A model generated the notes under the pieces. That model saw only the letters and a program-made list of their open reading frames with translations. It was not told where the DNA came from and searched no databases. From positions 9,610,001 to 9,674,000 of the forward strand of contig CP075496.1 of NCBI GenBank assembly GCA_021613535.1: a stretch of 64,000 nucleotides of DNA, written 5' to 3'. The position numbers were made by a program, and so were the translations under genes. The DNA is from Adineta vaga. Taxonomy: Eukaryota; Animalia; Rotifera. Shown piece by piece: positions 1 through 53,504 of this stretch. Each line of letters starts with the position of its first letter. The first letter of the stretch is position 1.

Positions 1-1634
1 TGCTACAACTTCACCTAATTTTGCATCTTTTTCCCATTTCATTACACGATTATTCCATGAATCGGATACATACAAACATTTATCTTGTCCAATAAAGATA
101 TATGTTGGATGATTGAATTGATGAAGACGATTTCCTGGTCCATGACCACCAGCAACTGTAGTACCACGAGTATCACCTAACTCATATCGTTTGACTCTAT
201 GATAATCACTGTCAGTAGCATAGATAAGTCCTTCGTCATCCACAGCTATCGCAAAAGATGCAATATTATTAAGGACTTTTTCAAAACGAGCATCCAGATC
301 TGACGTAGATCGTTTTACTATGCGTTGATTGTGATAATCACAAATGATATAACTATCTGATTGCTGATGAAAAACAATATTTGAAGGTGCACATAACATA
401 TTTTGTCCATAACCAGATATATTTTTTCCAGCTATACGTTGACTCATATTCGTTCCTTCTTTAAATTTCATAATACGATGATATAAAGTATCAGCAACTG
501 AAATAGTTTGTCTAGAATTTACAATAAGACCTTGAGGTGAACGAAGATTATTCATTATAGAACCAAAACCTCCATCATGATTACGACCACCGGCAAAGGT
601 TTGAGATTCACTAAAGATATTAAAAAACATGTTTCTCTTTCGGTCAAAAAAAGTTTCATACGAACCATATCTCTGTCGAAACCATAGCATTTGCTGGGCG
701 TGTGCGCATAGTCCGGTCCTTTGTTCGTTTGGTTGGAGATTTTTTTCTTTGACAGCATTCGGATTTCCATTCAGCAGTTCGTGGTATAAATATTTCTGCT
801 ATAATGAAGAATACGTACAAATAAGAGAATCGAAATTGTAAGATAACTTACAATATAGAATTTCATTAAAAAATATCTCTGCATTTGCGCGCAACCGATG
901 TGTAATAAATGGTCTCTGCCTTTCGTCACTTTCAATGGTAACTTCGTCAGTTATACGTTGAATAATATCGACGATATTCACATTTTCCTCAACAATATTT
1001 CTCAATAAGCATTCCATGTATAGATTATTAGGATTTGTTTTATTAGCGGCACATGCATATTGAATCAGTGTTTTATCAGATGCTTTCATCTTACTGAGTC
1101 CTTTGCGTCGCGCTTGAACTAAAGAAAATATACGAGTCCATATTTGTGACGGAAATATACACGATATTACTTACAGGCAGATTTCGATTCATTTTTTATT
1201 CGATATTGTCTACAACAATCCAAGATCATAACGAGCATGTACGATGCTTCTGTGTCTCTTAACCGTCCTATTACTCTATCAAGTGGTGTACCAAAAGCTG
1301 CAACATCTTCGCCACTAGAGATACGATCATCTCCGGTGTTAATCAAATAATTCGTACCATCAATCTGACAACTGTGGCCAGAAAAAAAGAATAAGATCAA
1401 ATCCCCATCTTGAATAGTTTTAGTAAATGTAATGATATTTTCCAACATCGTTTCGTGTTTTGCAACATCGTAATGCGCTGTAGATTTAAATTTTATTTTT
1501 TCAAGTGATTGCTCTAAATCTGTAGCATTCTTGATAGATTGATTTAGTTTATTCTGTTCTTGTTCGTAATTATCATTTCCAATAAGCAATGCTAACCTTC
1601 GAAGAATACGAAAATTATCATTAGGATTTGCCAT
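1..1634 (-). CDS. Caspase-like (peptidase C14) domain fused to an NHL-repeat beta-propeller; 3' end runs off the window
   Basis: Exons 1634-1175 (ALLIGNDNY, FSGH, LDCCR: dyad intact), 1118-852 (p10-like LIQYACAANKT), 798-~668, then ~610-1 (NLRSPQGL, VADTLYHRI, VAGGHGPGNRLHQFNHPTYI). The GT-AG introns splice in frame. Confidence 0.85.
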
Positions 1635-1994
1635 CAGCGATCGAATAATTATATCTAAAATAATGAACAAGGACAAATATTGTAATATCTAATAATTTCT
1701 TTAAAAACGATAGGCCTTGCTGCTCGTTGATTTTCATTCAAAGTAATTTGTCAGTGTATTGTTTGAAAGTATTTGTCTCGCCTAGGTTACGAAAGAAAAG
1801 ATTGTTCGTTCTATTCATTTTCTCAATGCACATTTGTAACGAAAGCAAAAAAAGAGTTTTTTCACATCTCGAAAGAATTGGTGGATCACTCATGAAAGTT
1901 GTTGTTTCACAGTCACCTTCGTGTTTCTTTTCTTTTATTCGAAGATAATGGCAATAAAACTACTAAGTTCATGTCATGAGGAAAATAAATAGGA

Positions 1995-3852
1995 TTAATT
2001 TTGATGAATCTTATATTGTTGAATTCGATGATTATATGAATCAGCAACATACAGAGTGCCATCACTATCGAATACTAAACCTTCGGGACCATTCAGTTGA
2101 TGAGCTTTGTCTCCTGACATAAATGGATCGCCAGCAATGAGATCTCCATGAGAAGCATTCTTTCGCCAACGCATAACTCGATGATTCCAATGATCGGCAA
2201 CATAAACTGTTCCATACTTATCAACAGCTATTCCTGCAGGGCAATCCAGTTGAGTAGGATGTTTTCCTTTGCCATGACCACCAGCTACAATAATACCCTC
2301 TTTGGCACCTTCTTTCCATTTCATTACACGATTGTTCCAAGAATCGGATACGTATACTGATCTATCTAGACCAATGAAAATGTATGTCGGATGATTGAGT
2401 TGATTGGGACGCGATCCTTGTCCATGACCACCAGCAACTATTTCACTATATCTACTACCGATTCGATATCGTCTCACTTCATGATATTCACTATCCGAAA
2501 CGTAGATAAAGCCTTCATTATCTATAGCTATTCCAGAACATGTAATGTCGTCAATAATTATTTTAAAAATTTTATTCAATCCAAGCGTCACTTTAACCAC
2601 TTGTCGATTCTGAGAATCGCAAATTATAATAGAACTTTCTTTCTTCTTTCTACGATAAATAATATTAGTAGGTGCATAAAGCATATCATATCCATCACCA
2701 GGAATATTTTTACCGGCTATCCTATTGACTTCTTTCCCATTATTTCTATATCGCATAATACGATGGTTTAACGTATCGGCGATCATCAGAGTTCGATTAG
2801 GAGTCAGAAATAGGCCTCGAGGACAATTTAGTTGATATAATGTAGTACCAGGGCCATGATGATAGTTGCTATTGCTAGCCATACTGCGAGCTTTGGTATT
2901 CCATCTGGCATATTTTGGTATATTAATTTTAGCTATAAAAAAGAAGAAAAAAATGTAGTTCATTCAAGACTTGATTAAATGTGAGATGAATTCCACGCAT
3001 CATTTATTCACTGTTTCGATTCGAGATTGAGAGTGATTGCGAGAAAATAACTGATATGAATCGATACTTACACTGTATCAACTCTATCAAATAGATCTCG
3101 TCATCTTCGTTCCATTCGTATGTAGTGAATGGCTTTTGTGTTTTGTAAGTTTCTTCAGACACATCTTCTCTCACATTTTTGAAAATATCAACAAGTTTAA
3201 CATCTGGTTCGGTGATGTTCTTTACTAAATGTTTGAAATATAGATTATTTGTAGTTGTTCGATTAGAAGCACATGCAAATTGAATTAAAGTGTTATATGG
3301 TGCCTCCATTTCGTGTAAACCTTTGTCATTGACTAAATTAATTGAGCAAAGATAACTCATGATCCGATAGAACTAGAAAACGTGCTACTTACCATAGGGT
3401 GGTATATTACTTTTTAGATGATATGGTCTACAGCAATCTAATATAAGAGTAATCATACATGTTTCCCGTTTCTTCGTTATGCGTTTCAGTACTTTGTTAA
3501 TTGAGGTAGCGAGAACTTCAATATTTTTGTCATCTTCTATGTGACTGTCTTTCGTAGGTATCAAATAGTTCCTGCCATTTACTTGACAGCCATAACCGGA
3601 AATAAAGACCAAAATAAAATCACCATCATTGATAACTTTGGTGAACCTTTTTACTGCTGCCATTGTGTCTGGTTGTGTTTGAAGATTATGATGAAATTCA
3701 GTTTCGAAATTCATGGCTATGAGCAATTGCTCCAAATTTTGAGCATTTTTGAGACAGTGATCAAGATTATTTTCGTCGTCAGTATAGCTATCATTGACAA
3801 TAATAAGGGCGATCTTTCGAGCAAAAACAGATTCGTTATTAAGAAGTGTCAT
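1995..3852 (-). CDS. Caspase-like domain (catalytic His replaced by Tyr) fused to an NHL-repeat propeller
   Basis: Exons 3852-3393, 3332-3072, 2932-1995, with both introns in phase 1. Motifs ISGYG and LDCCR; NHL repeats such as VAGGHGQGSRPNQLNHPTYI and YVADSYNHRIQ. Confidence 0.87.
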
Positions 3853-4349
3853 ATTTTATCATAGGTAGAAGTGTGACATAAATTCTGTTGGTTACCTTAT
3901 TAATAAAGAGAGAAAAAGAATACATTCATGTGACTGTCAATACATCATTCAAGATTTAAGATATCATTATATTAGGATCAATAGATGAGAATCCTAAAAC
4001 TTCTACGAAATACAAGTAACTATTTCGATTGTTCAATAGATATTTTTCTTCGAAAAACAGATTAAGATTGAAATCACGTACTTATAAAATGTAGTATGTA
4101 CACACGTGTTGTATGTTGCTTGGAAGCATTCAATGTTTGATGATTATAAAAGAAAGAGTCTGCTATATTTTCTTTTGTTCTGTTTCTTCCTAATGTTTGT
4201 TTGTTGAGTTTGAAGGACGGCTAAATTAAATATTTTTTCCAACCGATGTAAAATACATATAAATATTTCTTGTTTTTTTTATTGTTGCGTCAAATGATGA
4301 GATGTTCGTAAGAAAAACTTTGAATTGTTTTTTAGATATAAAGAGAACT

Positions 4350-6398
4350 ATGGCAAGTTCCACTGTGAATTCGCCCTATCGAAAACTTGCTCTGATTCTA
4401 AGTAATGGAAACTATAGTGAATCATATAATCAACTCAATAATGCCGAGGAAAACGCAAAAGCGCTCAAGAGTTCACTCAAACAAATCGGTTTTCAAGTTA
4501 CAACTGTTTGTGATAAAGGAAAACATGATATGAATACAGCTATCATCGATTTCTGTAGAACAATTCGCAACGGTGATATAGTTTTGCTGTACTTTTTTGG
4601 TCACTGCTATCAAGTTAAAGGTAAAAACTATATCATACCAGTCGGTGATAATGAAATCGAAGAGGATAGAGATGTCGAAGATTTTGCTGTCGATCTCGAT
4701 AGAACTCTCGGACGTTTAGTAGAAAAAAATAGTTCTTTCGTGAATATATTTGTCTTGGATTGTAATGGAACTTATTCATTGCAAAAAAATACAGCATCAA
4801 GTTGTAAGTACTATTTCAAATGATATCTTTGAAAAAATAGAATATTCCCGATATGTTTCTAGCTACAAATAAAAGAAAAGGTGTCCCTGAAATGAAACAA
4901 TTAGATGGACTCTTTATTCAATGTGCCTGCAGTACTAATGAATCAACGCGTAATAACTTATTTACGAAACACTTACTTAATAATATTCAAGAAGCAAATG
5001 TTAATATTCCTGATCTTTTCTGTCAAATCTCTAAAGATGTTTTAAAGGAAAGTGATAAGAAACAACGACCACTATCTATCAATGGCTTAAATCTAGATCG
5101 TGAAGTTTATCTAAATGAAGTTAAACGTCAAAGTAAGTTTCTATAAGATTAGCTATTGACAATTGTTTTCTAAATCTTCAGAGTGGGATGATTTGGACAA
5201 CGAGGAGATACCACCACTTATGAAAAAACAAGAAGAATTACGAGATTGCTATGATAATTATCCGAATGTTGATGATGTTATCAATCGAGATACACCAGAT
5301 ATGAAAAAAGCAGATGAACTTACCGAATCCCTATTGTCAACACAACCATCAGGAAAAGTGACTGACAAGAATACAGTATTTCACGCATTAAACAATTTAA
5401 TGGCGGATAACAATCAAGAATGCGTGTTTTTTGACTCAAAACAAGGTATGAAACTTCATGATGCATCAGCAAATTTAACCGATCTTAATGTGAAAGAAAG
5501 ACCATTTGTCTTGAAATTAAAGAGCAATGAAGATTTTGTTGATTACAGAGATCCAAAAGATAAGATTTTTGATCTAAAAGTGATCAAAACACTGGATAGT
5601 GCGATCGAACAAAATGAGTCACATCCTGTTATTGATGATATAGTGGAAAAATTAGCGAAAGCACATGACACTGACAAAAGTAATATAGTTGTAAAAAATG
5701 TGTATTTGGGATCGTTCAACATAGTCTATACGGTGAACGATATAACAAGCAATGTTGTTAAAAAGTTAACTAGTGCTTATCGAAAATTAAAAGAACAATT
5801 CAAACAGTTTGTCGCTGCAAAAATTCATCCACTATTGTTTCGACCATCATTTGATATAGCTCAGTTCGATGCTGGTGGTGATAAAACATTTGCAGCACCA
5901 TCAAGTCACCAAGTTGGACCACCTGGACGAACTAAAGAATATATTTCACCCGTTGGTTATACAAGATATGGATTAAAAGTTTTGGGTAAGTATGAAACAG
6001 ACGAATGGTTGCATCCATTCGGAATACCAGGAAACTGGTATAGAGCCTTCCATGGAACGGGACGCGCAACCGCTGCAGATTTTGGTAAGTCAGGTGAACC
6101 AATAGATAGGGAATTTGCCTGTGTTGATGCTGCTTCTAACATTCATAAAACTGGATTTCGTAAAGCAAGAATTCATTTCCATGGAGAGGGTGTCTATTGT
6201 TCTCCAAAATCGACTTTTGTAGAGGAAGGGTATGCCGGCGAAGTGACAATGGATACAATCGAAGGAAAGAAAAAGTTCAAGATGATGTTACAAGTAGCTG
6301 TCAGTCCTGATGATGTCAAGATTGTGGGCAATGACATTTGGGTTGTTTCCCATCCTGAAAGTATTCGAACGTACGGAATACTCATCAAAGAAGTTTAA
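4350..6398 (+). CDS. Caspase-like pseudoprotease (Cys replaced by Asn) + SEA-like domain + NEURL4-type ADP-ribosyltransferase-like domain
   Basis: Exons 4350-4803, 4863-5132, 5182-6398 with phase-1 introns. Caspase-like FGH and LDCNG; NIVVKNVYLGSFNIVY; ART motifs PVGYTRYGLKV, WYRAFHGT, GVYCSP, MMLQVAV, IRTYGILIK. Confidence 0.82.
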
Positions 6399-6764: not shown

Positions 6765-8063
6765 ATGCAATTGTTACTTTTCTGTATTTGTGAGTGAATG
6801 AACTGCTATTGAAAAACTTTTTCACGTCGATTATTGATATTCTAGTTCTTTACATACCAGTTATATCATCGAAGATTAGTCCATGTGCAAAATGGAGTAC
6901 AAATGGAATTACCGTTGCGGGTACTGGCATCGCTGGCAATACATCTCAACAACTTTATAATCCACAAGGCATCTTTGTTCATAAACAAACGAATACATTA
7001 TATGTAGCTGATTTCAGCAATCAACGTGTTCAGAAATTTTCATTGAATGAATCATCTCCTATAGGTATTACTGTTGCGTCAGGTGTTTGGTGGATGCCTG
7101 TCAATATTCATGTTGAATCTGATGACAATAGTAATAAGAAAATTATTTATGTGATAACATTTTCATCTGAACATGCTGAAAAATGGATTGAAGGAATTCT
7201 TCATGGTGAACGACTCTTTCCTAGATGTCGTGCATGTTCAGGTATTTCAGTTGATAGAGACAAAAATGTATATCTATCATCGTCGAGTGACTATTGCATA
7301 TACAAATGGTCACCGCAAACCAATACAACACTAGTTGTTGCTGGTCATGAAGCGCAAGCAGGATATACTGATGAGAATCTTTTCGAACCTCGAGGAATCT
7401 ATGTTGATCAGACAAAACAAACAGTGTACGTAGCTGATTTGAAAAAGAATCATATTCAGAAATGGACTATGGGCGCGAATGAAGGTCCAACTGTCGCTGG
7501 TTCGCGAGCAGGAGAGAGTGGAAACACTGTTGATCTTCTCTCAGAACCAGTAAATGTACAAGTTGATGAAGAAACAGATATTCTCTACATAGCTGACAAA
7601 AGAAACCATCGAATTCAACGTTGGTTTCCAACGGCATTTGAAGGTGACACGATTGCTGGTGGAAATGGTAAGTATTCTATTATTCACGAATTTGATTAAT
7701 AAAAATCTATGTATATGTATGTAATGATAAATGATATAGGTGAAGGTCATGGTGCCGATCAACTTCGTTTTCCAAATGATCTAGCATTTGATCGTGATGG
7801 TAATCTTTTTGTGTGTGATACTACAAATCATCGTATTCAATTTTTTAAATTGATTGATAATCAATCATGTAAATCGACATCAACAGGTGAATTTCTAATT
7901 CTTTTCGAAATTATTGACTTTTATTTTTACTTTTAGCTATTGTTGCGATATTCAAGTGAGTGTATATCGTACGTATTTCTTTCATCGAATATGATGTCAA
8001 TATTTTAGAATGATCGTTCTATTTGGCACATTGTCGATCTTAGCGTGGCTATACATGAATTAA
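6765..8063 (+). CDS. Secreted, probably GPI-anchored NHL-repeat protein
   Basis: The spliced N-terminus MQLLLFCIFLYIPVISS is signal-like (intron 6790-6845). CAKWSTNGITVAG is followed by NHL repeats. Small 3' exons give the hydrophobic tail MIVLFGTLSILAWLYMN*. Confidence 0.8.
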
Positions 8064-21237: not shown

Positions 21238-22203
21238 ATGTTCTGGTACAAATATCAATTATTTATTTTATGTTTAATTTTAAATTTGTTGATTGTCAAC
21301 ATGACTGCAGTGATGGTACAACCAATGGCTAATCACAAATTGCAAGGTACGAATTATTCGAAAGAGAACATAACTTCGATGCAGATTTTTCTTCTTCTTC
21401 TTCTTCTACTTGTAGATAAAGATTCTTCTACAGGAACCAGTTCATTAATTATTGTTGATGTTCAAAATTGTTTTATCAGTGGAAATCTTGCACTATCAGA
21501 TAATCCTACTGGTCAAGATGGTGCTGATGTTGTTCCTGTTATTAATCGTCTACTTCAAACTGTTTCATTTGATGTCATCATCTATACTCATGATTGGCAT
21601 CCGACAGATCACATTTCATTCTTTCAAAATCTCGACAAACGTAGACAATATTTATCAGGAGATAAAAACACAACATACAAACCATTTGATACAGTTACAT
21701 ATACAGGTCCGAAAGTGACAACGGAACAAGTATTATGGCCAGTACATTGCATACAAGATACTAAAGGTGCTGCATTGCATAAAGATCTTATTGTTGATTC
21801 ATCGAAGAAAAATGTCTTTCACGTAAAAAAAGGTATGGATTCAGATATTGATAGTTATTCGGCATTTTGGGATAATAATAAAGGTCAAAAGACCGAATTG
21901 GATGGTATACTCAAGAAATGGAATGTTACACATGTATATGTCACTGGATTAGCTACGGATTATTGTGTAGCAGCAACAGCTTTAGATGCAATTGATTTAA
22001 ATTATACAACTTATCTTGTTGAAGACGCATGTCGAGGCGTGAGTACGGAAACAATTAATAAAAAAACACAAGAAATGAAACAACGTGGAATATATTTTAT
22101 TCATTCAAATCAAGTCAAAGGTTTAGTTGGCGGTGCATATTACAATCAAATGTGTTTTGTACTGATGAGTTTTTCAATATTTTTATCGTTTTTTACTTTT
22201 TAA
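21238..22203 (+). CDS. Nicotinamidase (PncA/isochorismatase family) with signal peptide and hydrophobic C-terminal tail
   Basis: IIVDVQNCF, THDWHP..HISF, LWPVHC, KKG..SDIDSYSAF, TGLATDYCV (Asp-Lys-Cys triad). Probable intron at about 21347-21416. Confidence 0.9.
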   Translation: MFWYKYQLFILCLILNLLIVNMTAVMVQPMANHKLQGTNYSKENITSMQIFLLLLLLLVDKDSSTGTSSLIIVDVQNCFISGNLALSDNPTGQDGADVVPVINRLLQTVSFDVIIYTHDWHPTDHISFFQNLDKRRQYLSGDKNTTYKPFDTVTYTGPKVTTEQVLWPVHCIQDTKGAALHKDLIVDSSKKNVFHVKKGMDSDIDSYSAFWDNNKGQKTELDGILKKWNVTHVYVTGLATDYCVAATALDAIDLNYTTYLVEDACRGVSTETINKKTQEMKQRGIYFIHSNQVKGLVGGAYYNQMCFVLMSFSIFLSFFTF

Positions 22204-23473: not shown

Positions 23474-24300
23474 TTATAATTGACATAAATATTCATAGTT
23501 TAGTTTTATCCAATAAATATCTTGACTTTTCCAAGTATGATAATTTGTATCATTTTGTGGTTGACATGTTTCAGGATCATATGGTATATAATGACGAGTA
23601 GTAAAAAATAATTGAATTAAATTAGCTCTTACAGGCATAGTTTTTATATTTGCCCATTCCATCATAACAAATGGAATATTTATAAAATTAAACATACGTT
23701 CACCTGTTTCACATAAATAATGTTCCGATGTTTCAATATCAATTTTAATAATTGCTTCATGAATATTTCTTTCATATACAATAGGTAAAAGATCATCAAA
23801 ACGAATGGTTCGAACAACGGATAGATTTTTATCGTCTTTTGAAACTTCCTCATTCAAATATTGTGATCCAATATTGTTGGGAATATTTTTTTTAATTGAT
23901 AAATAGACATTCGATTTATTGTAAAGTGCACGAGGAACAAGAATAACATTTCGTTCAACATGTTCAAGTTGAATAGCTTGACGAATCAATTCAATGTTTG
24001 GCTGAAAACATTCAATAGAAATGACATTTGAGCAACCGACTACTGCTGCATACATAGTATACACTCCAATATTAGCACCAATATCAAAAAATGCATATTG
24101 TCGATTAGTAGAAAGAACACGCATTAAACGTGTTACTAAATGTTCTTCCCAAATACCAGTTGAAACTAACATACCACTAATATCTCGATCTCGTTCCACT
24201 TTATGAACACATACAGTAGTACGATATTTATTCAATAACAATTTCGTTTTAATACATGTATTTATTGGACTAATGATGGTGTTGGATCTTGTAAAATTAC
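23474..24300 (-). CDS. FkbM-family SAM-dependent methyltransferase; 5' exon(s) unresolved (to about 24520)
   Basis: GIWEEH, FFDIGANIGVYT, IECF, IRFDDLL, IIKIDIETSE, VMMEW. Confidence 0.8.
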
Positions 24301-49242: not shown

Positions 49243-52200
49243 TTAAGACTGCTCATTAGTCTCCTCGCAGTCCTCTTGCAATTGATGTTTATTTTTCAAC
49301 ATTTCAATACTATCCATCGCGTGTTTATTGGCATGAGCTGTTGCTTGTCTGTTGTATTCTGCCGGATTCTCTTTGTATAGGTGAGCTTTTTCAAGAGACA
49401 TGGCATCATCGAAGTTCGGTACTTTCAAAAGATCAACAATATTTTCAAAGATCGTACTCATGTTTGTTTTCACATGCCAATTTCGATTCAAAATTTGATG
49501 ACAAATTTTTCCATCACCATTGATATTCACGTGATATATAGGTGTAAAAAAGCGAACATCTGGTGCGCAGTTCGGATAGATTTGGTCGAATTGAATGTAT
49601 AACATCCAAAATCTGTTTGCGTAAGGTGTATTTGAAGGTCCTTTCAAGCTTACTTTCCAAAAAGCTATATTTTCACGAACAATGAAAACAATGATATCCG
49701 CTAAAGGACGTCTATTTATTGCATTGTATTCATTCAAAATACGACGAACACATATTGAATTGTTCATGTTCTCGTTTAGTAATGGTCGATGAATTGCTGG
49801 TTCGCTGAAAGCGAGAGGAATGTCGCGTTCGGGCTTGTCGATTATACCAGATTTGGTCGTGGATCGTTTTGAAAGCCATATAGCTGCTTCTTGCTCAAAA
49901 ATAGAAGCCAGTTCAATGTCCGATCGACTTTTCAGATCTTTATAAACATAGCCACCTGAATCGATACACAATCGACGAGTTTGTTTAACTTTAACAATGT
50001 CTTCTTGTGTTTTCAGTTCATTATCGTTTATAAACGAAATAAAATCCATCACAATTCCACTCTTTTCAATATGTCGTTTTACATCCTTAATTAATACTTT
50101 ACTATAATTATCAATTCCATCAGAAAAACAAATAATCAATTTTTTACAATCTTTATGCGCTCGTATTGGGCTTTTCGTGAATACATTAATTTGTCGAATT
50201 GCTTCATGAATGGCGTCATACATACATGTCCATTCTCCGCCACATTCATCAAGAGAAAGTGCCCGATCGAACTTTTCATGATTTGGAGTAATGGGACAGA
50301 GTGTTTTATATTTTGTTTCAAACTGAATTAAACCAATTGCATACACTTCGTTTATTGAACGTATATTGTCACTTAATCTTGCTAACATTATTTTGCAAAT
50401 GTCAATATGAGAGCAATTCTTCACTTTATCATAAGATGGAACACGATAATCAGACATCGATCGACTACGATCGAGAAGAATTATAGTAGCTTGACGTGTT
50501 GGATTAGTAGCAATATCATTTGATAATGCATCAGCATGGGTTATGTTGATTTTCAAACTAGTATTGAAATGTAAAGGTAATCGAGGATCTGGGAGGTGTT
50601 GTTTTTCATCCAAAATTAACTCTGGTTTCACATTACGATATGAATTATCTTTCGTACAACTGAGAGGATCAAAAATTTGAAAGAAATGATTCATATCTCT
50701 TGGCGTTTTTGCATCAGAACGGATTTCATTTTTTGATGTTACAAGTAGTCCCACTGTACGATCTTTTTCTAATAAAATAAGTTGATTTCGAGTATGATTA
50801 GTCACAGCACCACGTGTAATTATACTAAATGAACGATAATCATTTTTGTGTGCTATAATCCTATATAACTCTTTCACTTCGGTGTCTGTCCAATACTTTA
50901 ATAATTTTAAATCTGGGATGTTCTGTTCTCTTGGATCGTATATTATATAAACATCGCACTGACATTGTGTGTTGCGAGAAGTTTTCATTGAATTCGATAA
51001 ATACGACGTCAATGATCGAATATCAACGTGATGTTTTAGATCTTCATAATCGTGTTTATCGTCAAATTCTTCTAATAAAAGTGCTTGCCGATTACTTGTT
51101 GAGGTCGTCACAGGATCTTGAAAATAAGTAGAATGTAGTTTGTTATTATTAATCAGGGTGACATTCAAGAAGTAATCTTCTTCAATCGAGTTTGGATCAC
51201 AATTTTCTAGTATCCAACAGATTAACAGTGGTATAAAATCACAAATTTCTTTTGTGTCAATTTTGTTTGGATCGCACAAATGATTTAATAACTGGATTAA
51301 TGAGTCCATAAGTAGTGCTTTTTCGAATGTAAATATGAAACCATCGATTGTGTGTTTCAATGCGAGAATAGCTGGTGGAAATAAATATTTTCTTAGTTCC
51401 CGAAAAAATTCTGCTTCCATGATCATTCGTTCAACTTTTAATTCTGCATTTTCAGGTCGAAAATATAGTCTCAAAGCAAATAGACTACTGAGAAAAACGC
51501 TTTGAGGACGTTCTAATTGTTTGTATTCGTTAAAATGAAATGGACACCACCAATATGAATTGCCGAAAACAGGAGTTTTATCATCGTCAATTTGATACAT
51601 CGAGTTATCATATTCTTCTGGTAATCCATAGACATAGAAGTCTACTGCGTTGTTTTGAGAAGAATGCATAGGTGGTGAGAGTAAAAGAAAATCCTTAACT
51701 AATGCATTACGATCACTTTCGACAAATATGTGAAGTCGATGATTGAAGAGAAGGATAGTGTGTGTATTTCGTGAATAACGTTCTTGACAAAATTCAATTT
51801 TATGCCAGATTGCATTAATGAACTCTTTCATTGAGGTCTGTTGAGGTATTTCGATACAATAGCTTCTACATAACGTGCAAATACGAACTGTTAATGATTT
51901 TGTGTCGTCTAAATTGAGCGAAACATCGTTCGTCTCATCTACTTCTTCATCCGATGTTGATCGAGGTGATTCAAATGATTCTTCTTCTGTTGTATCTTCT
52001 GAGACAGTTTCAGAATGTTTACGTACCGATGGTTCAGGAACACAAGGTATGTCTTTATCATCAATGATCTCCTTGTCAGATTCTCCAGAAATACGTATTT
52101 TTTTCTGATTGTGTTCGCGTATTCTAATAGATGGTGATATGGGCCGATTTTCATCTGCTTTTTGTTCGATTGAAGATTGTGATGTAGTATGTTTAGTTTT

Positions 52201-53504
52201 CTCAGAAGATTCTTCGTCATTGATGTCCAATAATAAAGGTCGATTAAGTGGTATATTAAAACTTTTTAATCTGGTAACATCTCTTATTGATTGAGGTGAA
52301 TTACCGCTATAGGATGGTTTTCGTTGTGACTTCGAAGAGACACTTTCATCGTCGGAAACAGAATCTGGATAATCATCTGATTGTTTTCTTGCATATGTAA
52401 AGCTATCGTTATTTCTACCGAGAAGTTTGTGCTTTGGCTGATGAGCAATCTTTGGTTGCTTTGGCGTATCTATCAATGTTTGAAAGAACTCAATTCGCAT
52501 TCTAAGTACTCGTATGTTATCATGCAAAATCGATAGCTTTCCCTTTTTTGATACCCATACTTACAGTCATAATCTTAAGATAATTGAGAAAAATATATAC
52601 ATTCGATTTAGTATTGTTTTCTCGCTAAGCTAAATATCAGAACGAAATAGCAGTTCTATCTCTCTAAGCTTAGTCGAATGTCACGCTAAGCGCAGCAATT
52701 CTATATATGAAATGATGCGTTTTACGCAAATTTCATCATAACCCATAAAGAAAATGAAATGAGTAATAATGAAAAAGTCTTCTCACCCTTATCATTCTTT
52801 GGCACCAAAAATACTTTTCCTACGATAGAACTTGATCGATATGGTACTTGAAAGCCACGTGTTTGTAAACTAACAGCATCCGATACATCTTTCATTATTT
52901 CTTCAATATCTGTATTTGGTCTTTTAATGTGCTCTAACAAATTTTCCATAAAGCTACCATTTCTGTCATTTCGTGTTTCATCTTGTACTGCGCCACCAGG
53001 AGCGCAACCAAACACGATAAGAGTTTGTCGTAATCCATCTATCTTTGATAAACCTTCATTACTACGAGATGTTCCACTGTGTATTCTGCTTCGACAGCAA
53101 TCAAACAAATATATGACAGCGGCACATTTTTTAGACACTAATCTTTTCGTTATATAGTTGACATTAATTGCGTTAGTTTTAATATAGTCGCGTTCACTTC
53201 CTCCAAAGTCGAAACAATAATCAACAGGTAACAGATAGTTTTCATCATTATATTGTTTACCATGTCCAGCAAGATAGATAATTGCTAAATCTTCAGGCTG
53301 AAGTTCGTCAGTAAATTGGTCTATTTTTCTGTAAAATAGAGCTAATTCACAGTCTTTTTCAAATGTTACATGAAAGTGAATATCTTCGAGGACTTCTCGT
53401 AAGTCGTCAGCATCATTGACACAATAATTTAATGGATCTCTTGCATATTTATCAATGCCAATAACTAATGCACGTTTTCGTTTGTAAACAACGATAGATA
53501 CCAT
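49243..53504 (-). CDS. Caspase-like domain + acidic/Ser linker + possible Ubl domain + vWA + E2 (UBC) fusion
   Basis: Exon 53504-52787 (AGHG, FDCCR) has a phase-1 donor that matches the acceptor before 52469 (optional 9-nt exon 52573-52565). vWA MIDAS: LLDRSRSM, TCMYDAI, FSDGIDN. E2: GPSNTPY, IYHVNINGDGKIC. Confidence 0.75.

Follow-up and report, generated by a model that had tools for sequence, protein, structure and literature searches.

Gene organization and splicing at the locus

The analysed window comprises 64,000 nucleotides of the Adineta vaga contig CP075496.1 (positions 9,610,001 to 9,674,000 of the forward strand). Four of its genes begin with a caspase-like C14 domain: genes 1, 2 and 3 stand next to each other at the start of the window, and gene 4 lies further downstream (Table 1). 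Genes 1–3 have a common layout, namely a p20 exon, a phase-1 intron, a p10-like exon, a second phase-1 intron and a tail exon. The first donor is located 11 codons past the DCCR/DCNG motif and the second one at the end of the p10-like exon; read by hand, the donors are GTAAGT or GTGAGA and follow the first base of a codon, i.e., phase 1.

Table 1. Features of the C14 gene cluster, of gene 4 and of the neighbouring NHL gene (window coordinates)
Feature	Position	Strand	Evidence
Gene 1, linker and NHL propeller, truncated at the window start	1..798	-	NHL similarity to gene 2, 2e-61
Gene 1, p10-like exon	852..1118	-	Phase-1 introns 1119-1174 and 799-851; family HMM positions 155-247; joints 1118/1175 and 798/852
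Gene 1, p20 exon, C14 domain	1175..1634	-	ATG 1634-1632; PF00656 E 4e-17; RNA joint 1118/1175
Gene 2, NHL beta-propeller exon	1995..2932	-	Stop 1995-1997; PF01436 E 6e-32; joint 2932/3072
Gene 2, p10-like exon	3072..3332	-	Between phase-1 introns 3333-3392 and 2933-3071; RNA joints, family HMM
Gene 2, p20 exon	3393..3852	-	PF00656 E 7e-16; joint 3332/3393; His to Tyr (GYG), Cys kept
Upstream region shared head-to-head by genes 2 and 3, 497 bp	3853..4349		Sequence and contigs
Gene 3 (I4U23_020177), p20 exon	4350..4803	+	PF00656 E 3e-17; joint 4803/4863; His kept, Cys to Asn (DCNG)
Gene 3, p10-like exon	4863..5132	+	Between phase-1 introns 4804-4862 and 5133-5181; RNA joints (second one 5132/5182), family HMM
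Gene 3, tail exon: helical part, SEA-like sandwich, PARP-like ART	5182..6398	+	Model pLDDT 80.8; Foldseek and VIA matches
Downstream NHL-only gene	6765..7699	+	PF01436 E 9e-18
Gene 4 (I4U23_020191), tail exon: acidic/Ser-rich linker, further region, vWA, UBC (E2)	49243..52469	-	PF00179 E 3e-32, VWA_2 E 3e-7; P0129
Gene 4, complete C14 domain, one exon	52787..53504	-	PF00656 E 2e-34, model positions 1-230 of 233

All six splice joints of genes 1–3 were found exact in contigs from three transcriptome-like runs, in which intergenic DNA had no coverage, whereas a DNA run covered everything, including the full region of genes 1–3, and yielded none of the six joints. The first-pass annotation, made from the sequence alone, had described three neighbouring genes sharing a two-exon caspase-like cassette, with phase-1 introns after the DCxR motif and after the p10-like part, and had asked whether the C14 exons might instead end at in-intron stops. 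The PF00656 matches on the p20 exons, the hand-read donors and the spliced contigs bear the description out, and in these contigs the C14 exons do not end at those stops. A fourth cassette had been proposed as well, which holds in part: the C14 exon of gene 4 ends in a phase-1 GTGAGA donor joined to a vWA and E2 tail (intron 52470-52786; the junction is used by the public model I4U23_020191, P0129, a C14+VWA+UQ_con protein of 1314 aa), but its domain lies in a single exon rather than in two.

The hand model of gene 3 is identical to the public A. vaga protein I4U23_020177 (P0001, 646 aa). In gene 1, hand reading of the frame upstream of the propeller pointed to a putative extra intron at about 611-665 (GTTCGT donor) or to a frameshift. 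One contig shows a 5′UTR intron of gene 2 (3893-4078), which takes up part of the 497-bp upstream region. For the downstream NHL-only gene, hand reading gave a putative 25-nt first exon encoding a hydrophobic N-terminus, a phase-1 junction and an intron at 6790-6845, and its NHL exon resembles at its start the NHL exons of genes 1 and 2. That gene 3 might be spliced alternatively to this exon was considered and rejected, there being no loose end at position 5132 in the contigs, though contigs drop rare forms.

The C14 domain and its active site

The C14 domains of genes 1–4 scored 63, 59, 64 and 120 bits against PF00656, respectively (curated cut-off 21.4), and they begin no more than 12–27 residues from the start codon. 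Based on Pfam, genes 1–4 contain no death, death-fold or Ig domain and no NACHT or NB-ARC NTPase; a signal peptide was also absent. When the family profile was compared with PDB sequences, MALT1 was the best match (E 3e-29, 105 bits, full length), far closer than caspase-1 (E 1e-9) or metacaspase (E about 1e-5 to 2e-5). Bacterial C14 proteins were nearer in sequence than MALT1. A Microcystis caspase-family protein shared 38% identity over 224 aa (38% and 35% in two comparisons, E 6e-49 and 4e-38), and the best 150 profile-search matches were nearly all tandem double-C14 proteins; one relative (P0285) has the architecture C14-NACHT-HEAT. On these sequence comparisons, the C14 heads of genes 1–4 are a bacterial-type, paracaspase/orthocaspase-like (MALT1-like) domain of a family expanded in bdelloids.

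MALT1, a single-copy protein and to our knowledge the only animal paracaspase studied, is a scaffold as well as a protease. The rotifer domain shares with MALT1 and the type-2 paracaspases (C14B) similar His and Cys motifs (GHG, D-x-C-R), and the canonical family members keep an acidic pocket of the Asp365/Asp462/Glu500 type. Unlike that of MALT1, however, it is N-terminal, is accompanied by no death or Ig domains and carries NHL, PARP-like or vWA-E2 tails, and genes 1–3 are without two of the three S1 acids, with the dyad partly gone. The likeness to the orthocaspases of Microcystis aeruginosa extends across the whole domain, and these proteins also have varied C-terminal partners and tandem double-C14 forms, but the rotifer genes are spliced, with conserved introns. 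The rotifer tail set (NHL, PARP-like module, vWA+E2) and the head-to-head pairs are not described for bacteria.

MALT1 owes its specificity for Arg to three acidic residues of the S1 pocket, Asp365, Asp462 and Glu500 (PMC4357240). By residue count from the PDB profile alignment, Asp365 falls on the NDA motif of the family. All three acids are kept in gene 4 and the canonical paralogues, and genes 1–3 retain the Asp462 equivalent only (the Glu500 column may be off by about one position). Gene 4 has canonical NDA, GHG and DCCR motifs and an acidic L5 loop, as do most other family members, including the class B and C loci, and all of these look like active proteases. In gene 1 both His and Cys are intact (GHS, DCCR), with Asn at the Asp365 equivalent, and the protein may have kept its proteolytic activity, perhaps with another preference at P1. 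According to the motif tables, each of the other two genes has lost one member of the dyad, gene 2 its His and gene 3 its Cys; the first Cys of the DCN stretch in gene 3 might stand in for the lost one. Tyr in place of the catalytic His, as in gene 2, is also known from pseudo-orthocaspases (PMC6426788).

It should be noted that the A. ricciae orthologues have retained the two residues replaced in A. vaga, His at the Tyr of gene 2 and Cys at the Asn of gene 3, and that Cys is lost in an A. ricciae gene-1-like copy. In the single clade to which genes 1–3 belong, two of the three S1 acids are gone, and the catalytic His or Cys was lost several times over, not always the same residue in orthologues; this indicates a relaxed constraint on catalysis. 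The protease site is decaying in the three adjacent genes, so that their C14 domain probably serves for pairing and not for cutting.

It is conceivable, though we consider it unlikely, that C14 is an active killing or signalling protease in every member, activated by proximity when NHL or TPR tails sense a ligand, with ART and E2 as second effectors. This would agree with the canonical sites of gene 4 and of most other members, class B and C included, with the intact dyad of gene 1, and with the C14-NACHT-HEAT relative and the bacterial orthocaspases, which cut after basic residues (PMC6426788); bacterial and fungal C14-repeat and C14-NACHT proteins would be matching designs. Such a reading does not fit genes 1–3, from which two of the three S1 acids are gone, nor the missing His of gene 2 and Cys of gene 3, and the loss of different residues in different orthologues again signals that the constraint on catalysis is relaxed.

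The reading of a decayed, pairing C14 domain in genes 1–3 was examined further in a complex model, a check that had been proposed together with the cassette. The gene 2 C14 domain (as two exon chains) and the gene 3 C14 domain passed with a score of 0.82, against 0.01 for the best of three controls; of 78 solved complexes 51 attain the mark, and of 108 mismatched pairs 2 do. Between runs, 86% or more of the contacts agreed, and the partner pLDDT was at least 83. The model places the interface on the p20 part (residues ~57–68 and ~101–122) and not at the classical beta6 interface. The model supports C14–C14 pairing of genes 2 and 3, with the reservation that such a pass does not show which members pair with each other and may stem from a resemblance to caspase-fold dimers of known structure. 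As for the claim that C14 is a common interaction module, the loss of S1 and dyad residues, the head-to-head arrangement and the complex model speak for it in genes 1–3, but gene 4 and most members keep a canonical pocket, and therefore it is no family-wide rule.

Tails, boundary intron and gene order

The claim that the tails differ behind a common head, with NHL, NHL and SEA-like plus ART in genes 1–3, was upheld, the SEA-like part being a weak fold resemblance. The tail of gene 2 gave 108.6 bits against PF01436 within ~310 aa, with three repeats individually above the threshold. In the tail exon product of gene 3, residues ~101–220 form an alpha/beta sandwich and residues ~227–404 a PARP-like ART domain. 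The best matches of the modelled sandwich include SEA domains at Z 5.8–6.0, which is weak and under the noise level of the tool. For the ART part, Foldseek returned PARP16/12/10/13 with a probability of 0.98–1.0, and the top 14 VIA matches were all PARPs (Z 6.4–8.3). No significant Pfam match was obtained for this part, and a comparison of the gene 3 tail profile with PDB sequences gave chance matches only and no solved ART; the assignment thus rests on fold. His290 and Tyr338, the H-Y of the H-Y-E triad, are invariant in 40/40 homologues. The candidate third catalytic column has Asp in gene 3 and D19, E4, N5, Q4, K5 across the family. The last ~180 residues of gene 3 resemble the H-Y-E mono-ADP-ribosyltransferases PARP16, PARP10 and PARP12 in fold and in GT-type and Y-C-S-P-type motifs with their invariant His and Tyr, but differ from them in the variable or uncertain third position and in the helical and SEA-like part ahead, which PARPs lack. 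The E2 domain of gene 4 matched PF00179 with 111 bits over positions 1–138 of 140; read by eye in P0129, it has Cys in the expected motif, and HPN is replaced by HVN.

The A. vaga genome contains ~55 C14 loci, of which 24 were included in the census of tails and introns. These 24 carry NHL (10 loci), PARP-like modules (4–5), vWA-E2 (1) and other tails, and further bdelloid tails are R-S-E ART (PF01129), ADP-ribosylglycohydrolase ARH (PF03747), TPR and ART+TPR. No Pfam match was found for the middle region of L004, the tail of L010 or a 905-aa ORF of L002. The C14 and R-S-E ART protein P0124 was rejected as the counterpart of L004, whose tail it does not share. At L007 a nicotianamine-synthase-like ORF, possibly a separate gene, lies behind C14. 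The public model P0140 is clearly chimeric, and some family loci have many stops.

Random intron phases across the family had been named as the finding that would speak against exon shuffling. Within the 24 sampled loci, the boundary intron has a constant position and phase 1 in 9/9 scorable fusions, and in gene 1 by RNA; it is located at family-profile position ~248–252 across NHL, PARP-like, vWA-E2 and other tails. In class B loci the boundary introns are compatible with phase 1, and long gaps lie ahead of the NHL exon. By itself, the phase argument is statistically weak, since common descent predicts a shared phase-1 intron and the independent tail changes number only ~3–5. According to the tree of p20 parts, there were several tail changes: a clade with 95/97 support mixes NHL and ART tails, and an R-S-E ART fusion is nested among NHL fusions.

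The cluster order is kept in A. ricciae (C14-NHL, C14-NHL, head-to-head C14-ART, NHL), and both the fusions and their order are shared by A. ricciae, A. steineri and Rotaria. The head-to-head layout was also found at two other A. vaga loci.

Proposed mechanism and significance

We suggest the following scheme as the best overall explanation, with a probability of roughly 0.45: tails are swapped behind the phase-1 boundary intron, the C14 domain of genes 1–3 is mainly a scaffold, and gene 4 is a protease. The tails would be exchanged by recombination within the boundary intron or captured behind it. In the clade of genes 1–3, the C14 fold would be retained mainly for dimerisation, as a pseudo-protease that relates to active members as cFLIP does to caspase-8. 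The analogy for genes 2 and 3 is that a dead caspase-fold paralogue would pair with its relative through the protease fold; unlike cFLIP and caspase-8, the rotifer genes have no death-effector domains, their heterodimer is predicted only, with a non-classical interface, and the kinship is distant. C14 pairing would unite an NHL-propeller subunit, binding a ligand or target, with a PARP-like subunit whose output depends on NAD. In gene 4, an active protease directed at Arg/Lys would be linked to a vWA adaptor and to an E2 of the ubiquitin system. A role in conflict, innate immunity or stress signalling would fit the expansion, clustering, shuffling and active-site turnover, and NHL may act as sensor and ART or E2 as output in a putative immune function. 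It is rather improbable, in our estimate, that the whole amounts to a bdelloid receptor system new to animals, in which pseudo-paracaspases of bacterial descent pair divergently transcribed NHL "sensors" with PARP-like "outputs", protease relatives are coupled to E2s, and tails are swapped, possibly also as alternative tail exons.

We likewise doubt that this is an ordinary regulatory or housekeeping family of cytosolic TRIM-NHL-like RNA or protein binders with various enzymatic heads, expanded by bdelloid tetraploidy and tandem duplication. Genes 1–3 were expressed in all three transcriptome-like runs, as constitutive genes would be, and the window neighbours are mostly metabolic or receptor genes. 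Induction by a fungal pathogen is slight, with only 4 C14 genes up in A. vaga and 2 in A. ricciae and most changes downward (Nowell et al., PMC11258130). However, extensive tail swapping, clustering, a turnover of active sites between closely related species, and ADP-ribosylation or ubiquitin partners are typical of conflict systems, without being proof of one. An annotation artefact, or decaying horizontally acquired genes with separate or dead C14 exons and tails, has a very slim chance and is largely refuted: the frame problem of gene 1, the loci with many stops and the chimeric P0140 would suit it, but the GT-AG joints are exact in RNA-like contigs and absent from DNA, the frames are open, and the fusions and their order recur in the other rotifers.

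The first-pass annotation had called the system undescribed. The bdelloid C14 expansion, comprising 101 proteins, is already published, but the architectures and the intron logic were not found in the literature searched. Conflict systems of prokaryotes and fungi are characterised by caspase folds fused to sensors and effectors. Like the proteins of those systems, with their Aravind-type effector-sensor architectures, the rotifer family combines a caspase fold with repeats or adaptors and other effectors and shows lineage-specific expansion (PMC7159879, PMC8195603); unlike them, genes 1–4 have no STAND/NACHT NTPase, belong to an animal and are built via a conserved phase-1 intron. In this animal, a MALT1-like domain of bacterial type is present at ~55 loci and has received new tails, namely propellers and enzymes of ADP-ribosylation and ubiquitin chemistry; in one clade the protease appears to be turning into a scaffold for pairing. 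Should both the pairing and the output hold true, the family would be a tractable case of horizontally derived parts entering the eukaryotic signalling and immune repertoire through exon-level modularity, would offer a natural series of pseudo-paracaspases for studying scaffold function, and would be a candidate explanation for part of the pathogen resistance of bdelloids.

Gene structures, splicing and tails

The window lies on contig 4 of the six-contig, 100.8-Mb genome and is AT-rich (~31% G+C), with introns of 50-140 bp. Peptidase_C14 was matched by Pfam on the p20-type exons of the adjacent genes 1-3 (E 3e-17 to 7e-16). By sequence reading, all six introns of these genes were in phase 1, after the first codon base, and the first intron was located 11 codons downstream of the DCCR/DCNG motif. 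All six joints were recovered exactly, with GT..AG ends, in contigs from three transcriptome-like runs, in which the intergenic stretches were not covered; a DNA run covered the same region fully and contained zero joints. The automatic RNA label of these runs is tentative, and the pattern of joints and coverage is consistent with RNA. The two-exon C14 cassette with phase-1 introns, as read in the first-pass annotation, was thus borne out for genes 1-3, and the public protein I4U23_020177 (P0001, 646 aa) is identical to our model of gene 3.

Gene 4, the fourth cassette, was also expected to have two exons, but its C14 domain (E 2e-34, model positions 1-230 of 233) is encoded by one exon with no internal intron. 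Its proposed ending held: a phase-1 GTGAGA donor follows position 52787, and the public model I4U23_020191 (P0129, 1314 aa) joins this exon to one with vWA and UBC (E2) domains. The exact joints in the RNA-like contigs, together with P0001 and P0129, argue against stand-alone caspase transcripts. In gene 1, past the RNA-confirmed 852|798 joint, a stop is reached at 656 and the propeller is in another frame; either a putative 55-nt intron with a GTTCGT donor restores the frame or a frameshift precedes the propeller. In one RNA-like contig, the 5'UTR of gene 2 contained an intron of 186 nt, inside the region common to the gene 3 promoter.

Features of the window and of one sampled locus (L007)
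Feature	Position	Strand	Remark
Gene 1	1634-1175, 1118-852, 798 onward	-	exons by sequence reading
Gene 1, putative intron	~611-665	-	
Gene 2	3852-3393, 3332-3072, 2932-1995	-	exons by sequence reading
Gene 2, 5'UTR intron	3893-4078	-	
Gene 3	4350-4803, 4863-5132, 5182-6398	+	exons by sequence reading
NHL-only gene	6765-7699	+	predicted intron 6790-6845
Isochorismatase	21238-22203	+	typical bdelloid horizontal-transfer candidate
FkbM-type methyltransferase	23474-24241	-	typical bdelloid horizontal-transfer candidate
Gene 4, C14 ORF	52725-53504	-	
PARP-like ORF set	54641-56343	-	
PARP-like ORF set	56913-57479	-	
MGH1-like glycoside hydrolase	60685-61992	+	typical bdelloid horizontal-transfer candidate
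Nicotianamine-synthase-like ORF	L007:7263-8270	-	PF03059, E 8e-30

The tail of gene 2 is an NHL propeller (Pfam), and gene 1 has a similar one. The tail of gene 3, previously labelled SEA-like + ART, had no Pfam matches, and its profile matched none of the solved ARTs at the sequence level. In an AlphaFold model built from 40 homologues (pLDDT 80.8), its last ~180 residues matched PARP16/12/13/10 in Foldseek (probability 0.98-1.0, E ~1e-3), and the top 14 VIA-align rows were all PARPs (Z 6.4-8.3). His290 and Tyr338 were invariant, representing only the H and Y of the triad. The fold of the model thus points to a PARP-like ART. Residues ~101-220 are predicted to form an alpha/beta sandwich, with SEA domains among its top matches; at Z 5.8-6.0, under the VIA-align noise level, this is a resemblance only.

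The gene 3 tail module was also found alone and behind other heads: a ubiquitin domain in A. vaga, stonustoxin-helical, thioredoxin and fn3 domains in Rotaria, and a SAM domain (among the public proteins P0080, P0099, P0100, P0005 and P0111). Protists carry it as well, among them the foraminifer Reticulomyxa. Two tandem ORF sets adjoining gene 4 have the PARP-like half of this module as their last part (E 1e-39 and 1e-38 in an own-genome search; weak Pfam PARP match), and this half occurs alone at ~20 further loci of the genome.

Family placement and proposed tail exchange

Using a profile of 19 family members, the best solved relative was the MALT1 paracaspase over the full domain (E 3e-29), followed by caspase-1 (E 1e-9) and metacaspases (~1e-5). 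Bacterial proteins were nearer than MALT1, such as a Microcystis aeruginosa caspase-family protein (38% identity over 224 residues). Given this likeness, the N-terminal position of the C14 domain and the absence of a signal peptide, death domain and Ig domain, the sequences place the family in a type-2-paracaspase/orthocaspase-like C14 group, presumably cytosolic. This agrees with the bdelloid-specific expansion of 101 PF00656 proteins in A. vaga, many of them flagged as horizontal-transfer candidates, whose domain architectures were left undescribed (Nowell et al., 10.1101/2021.09.04.458992; PMC11258130). The top profile matches were dominated by tandem double-C14 proteins of 480-700 aa, a type present in both bdelloids and cyanobacteria (P0144 and P0145 from rotifers, P0147/P0310 from Microcystis), the second domain often being truncated or lacking the His. 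Close C14 relatives also included C14-NACHT-HEAT (P0285) and C14-ART(R-S-E)-TPR (P0246, A. vaga I4U23_016620).

The genome contains ~70 PF00656 exon matches at ~55 loci, and the census covered 24 of these loci (20 sampled and the four of the window). Three classes were distinguished: A, with an intron at profile position ~152 (including genes 1-3); B, with an intron at ~92; and C, with no internal intron (including gene 4). Tails were NHL at 10 of the 24 loci (once with TPR), the PARP-like module at 4-5, vWA-E2 at one and, as a doubtful fusion, a nicotianamine-synthase-like ORF at one; seven had an unassigned tail or none. Further bdelloid fusions join C14 to an R-S-E ART, an ADP-ribosylglycohydrolase or ART + TPR. 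The nicotianamine-synthase-like ORF follows, at a distance of 0.4 kb, a C14 cassette that has lost His and Cys, and it may be a separate gene. The Rotaria socialis protein P0140 appears to be a chimera, in which a vWA-E2 gene broken off within UBC runs into a truncated C14 and then a protein kinase; this hints at a neighbouring C14-kinase gene.

The expected non-random phase of the boundary intron, between C14 head and tail, was found in this sample, where the best model was phase 1 in 9/9 scorable fusions, including gene 4 and one locus with an intron-less core; three fusions lacked the intron. Its position was profile ~248-252 in 8/9, the donor of L004 preceding the end of the profile match; in gene 1 the intron was confirmed by RNA. 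A maximum-likelihood tree was built from single-exon p20 parts with no exon joining, leaving out class B and midpoint-rooted for drawing only. A 95/97-supported clade united genes 1-3, all PARP-module fusions, one NHL fusion lacking an internal intron and the doubtful nicotianamine-synthase locus, and in a separate clade an R-S-E ART fusion was nested among NHL fusions. Since clades mix tails, there have been several tail changes behind a single conserved intron, which fits exon-level swapping, here proposed to run via the phase-1 intron. With only ~3-5 independent tail changes, the phase argument alone is weak.

Active sites, gene order and pairing

Residues were equated with those of MALT1 by counting along the profile alignment: the Asp of NDA corresponds to Asp365, the DCCR Asp to Asp462, its second Cys to Cys464, and the L5 acid lies at or beside Glu500. 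In MALT1, P1 arginine is bound by Asp365, Asp462 and Glu500 (PMC4357240). Canonical members (classes B and C, gene 4 and bacterial relatives) keep NDA, GHG, DCCR and the acidic L5 loop. Every member of the clade holding genes 1-3 has another residue, usually Asn, in place of the Asp365 and L5 acids; the His is gone in four, including gene 2, and the Cys in seven, including gene 3 (Asn). The Tyr of gene 2 is the same change as in the known bacterial pseudo-orthocaspases with Tyr for His (PMC6426788). The syntenic cluster of A. ricciae differs: the His is present in its gene-2-like copy and the Cys in its gene-3 orthologue, whereas its gene-1-like copy has lost the Cys. Close orthologues thus differ in catalytic residues although their fold is still 60% identical, which points to constraint that is relaxed on catalysis but not on the domain.

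Gene order in A. ricciae is identical: C14-NHL, C14-NHL, a head-to-head C14-PARP-module gene and an NHL-only gene. At two more A. vaga loci, a C14-PARP-module gene is head-to-head with a same-clade C14 gene, 0.2-0.7 kb apart. The NHL-only gene that immediately follows gene 3 has a putative 25-nt first exon, which by eye starts a hydrophobic signal-like N-terminus, and a predicted phase-1 joint; its NHL exon start resembles those of genes 1 and 2.

Heterodimer prediction, called for at first reading, was run with the C14 exons of gene 2 as two separate chains against the gene 3 C14 (P0001 1-240). The complex scored 0.82 versus 0.01 for the best of three controls, passing a mark reached by 51/78 solved complexes and 2/108 mismatched pairs, with at least 86% of contacts agreeing between runs and a partner pLDDT of at least 83. 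The predicted interface is symmetric and lies, in both p20 parts, on residues ~57-68 and 101-122. The model supports binding of the two C14 domains; the pass may stem from likeness to solved dimers, and such modelling does not tell partners within the family apart.

The window does not amount to a pure immune island; besides the two PARP-like ORF sets, the rest of it contains ordinary and horizontal-transfer-like genes (GPCR, isochorismatase, FkbM-type methyltransferase, glycosyltransferase and MGH1-like hydrolase). Alongside the observed architecture, splicing, family placement, active-site states and synteny, we suggest the following. The C14-fusion family may have a conflict or immune role, against which counts the induction of few of these genes in the sole challenge experiment (PMC11258130). 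In gene 4, a functional protease would be coupled to vWA and E2. The C14 domain of genes 1-3 would serve as a pseudo-protease pairing module that brings a propeller subunit together with a PARP-like one.
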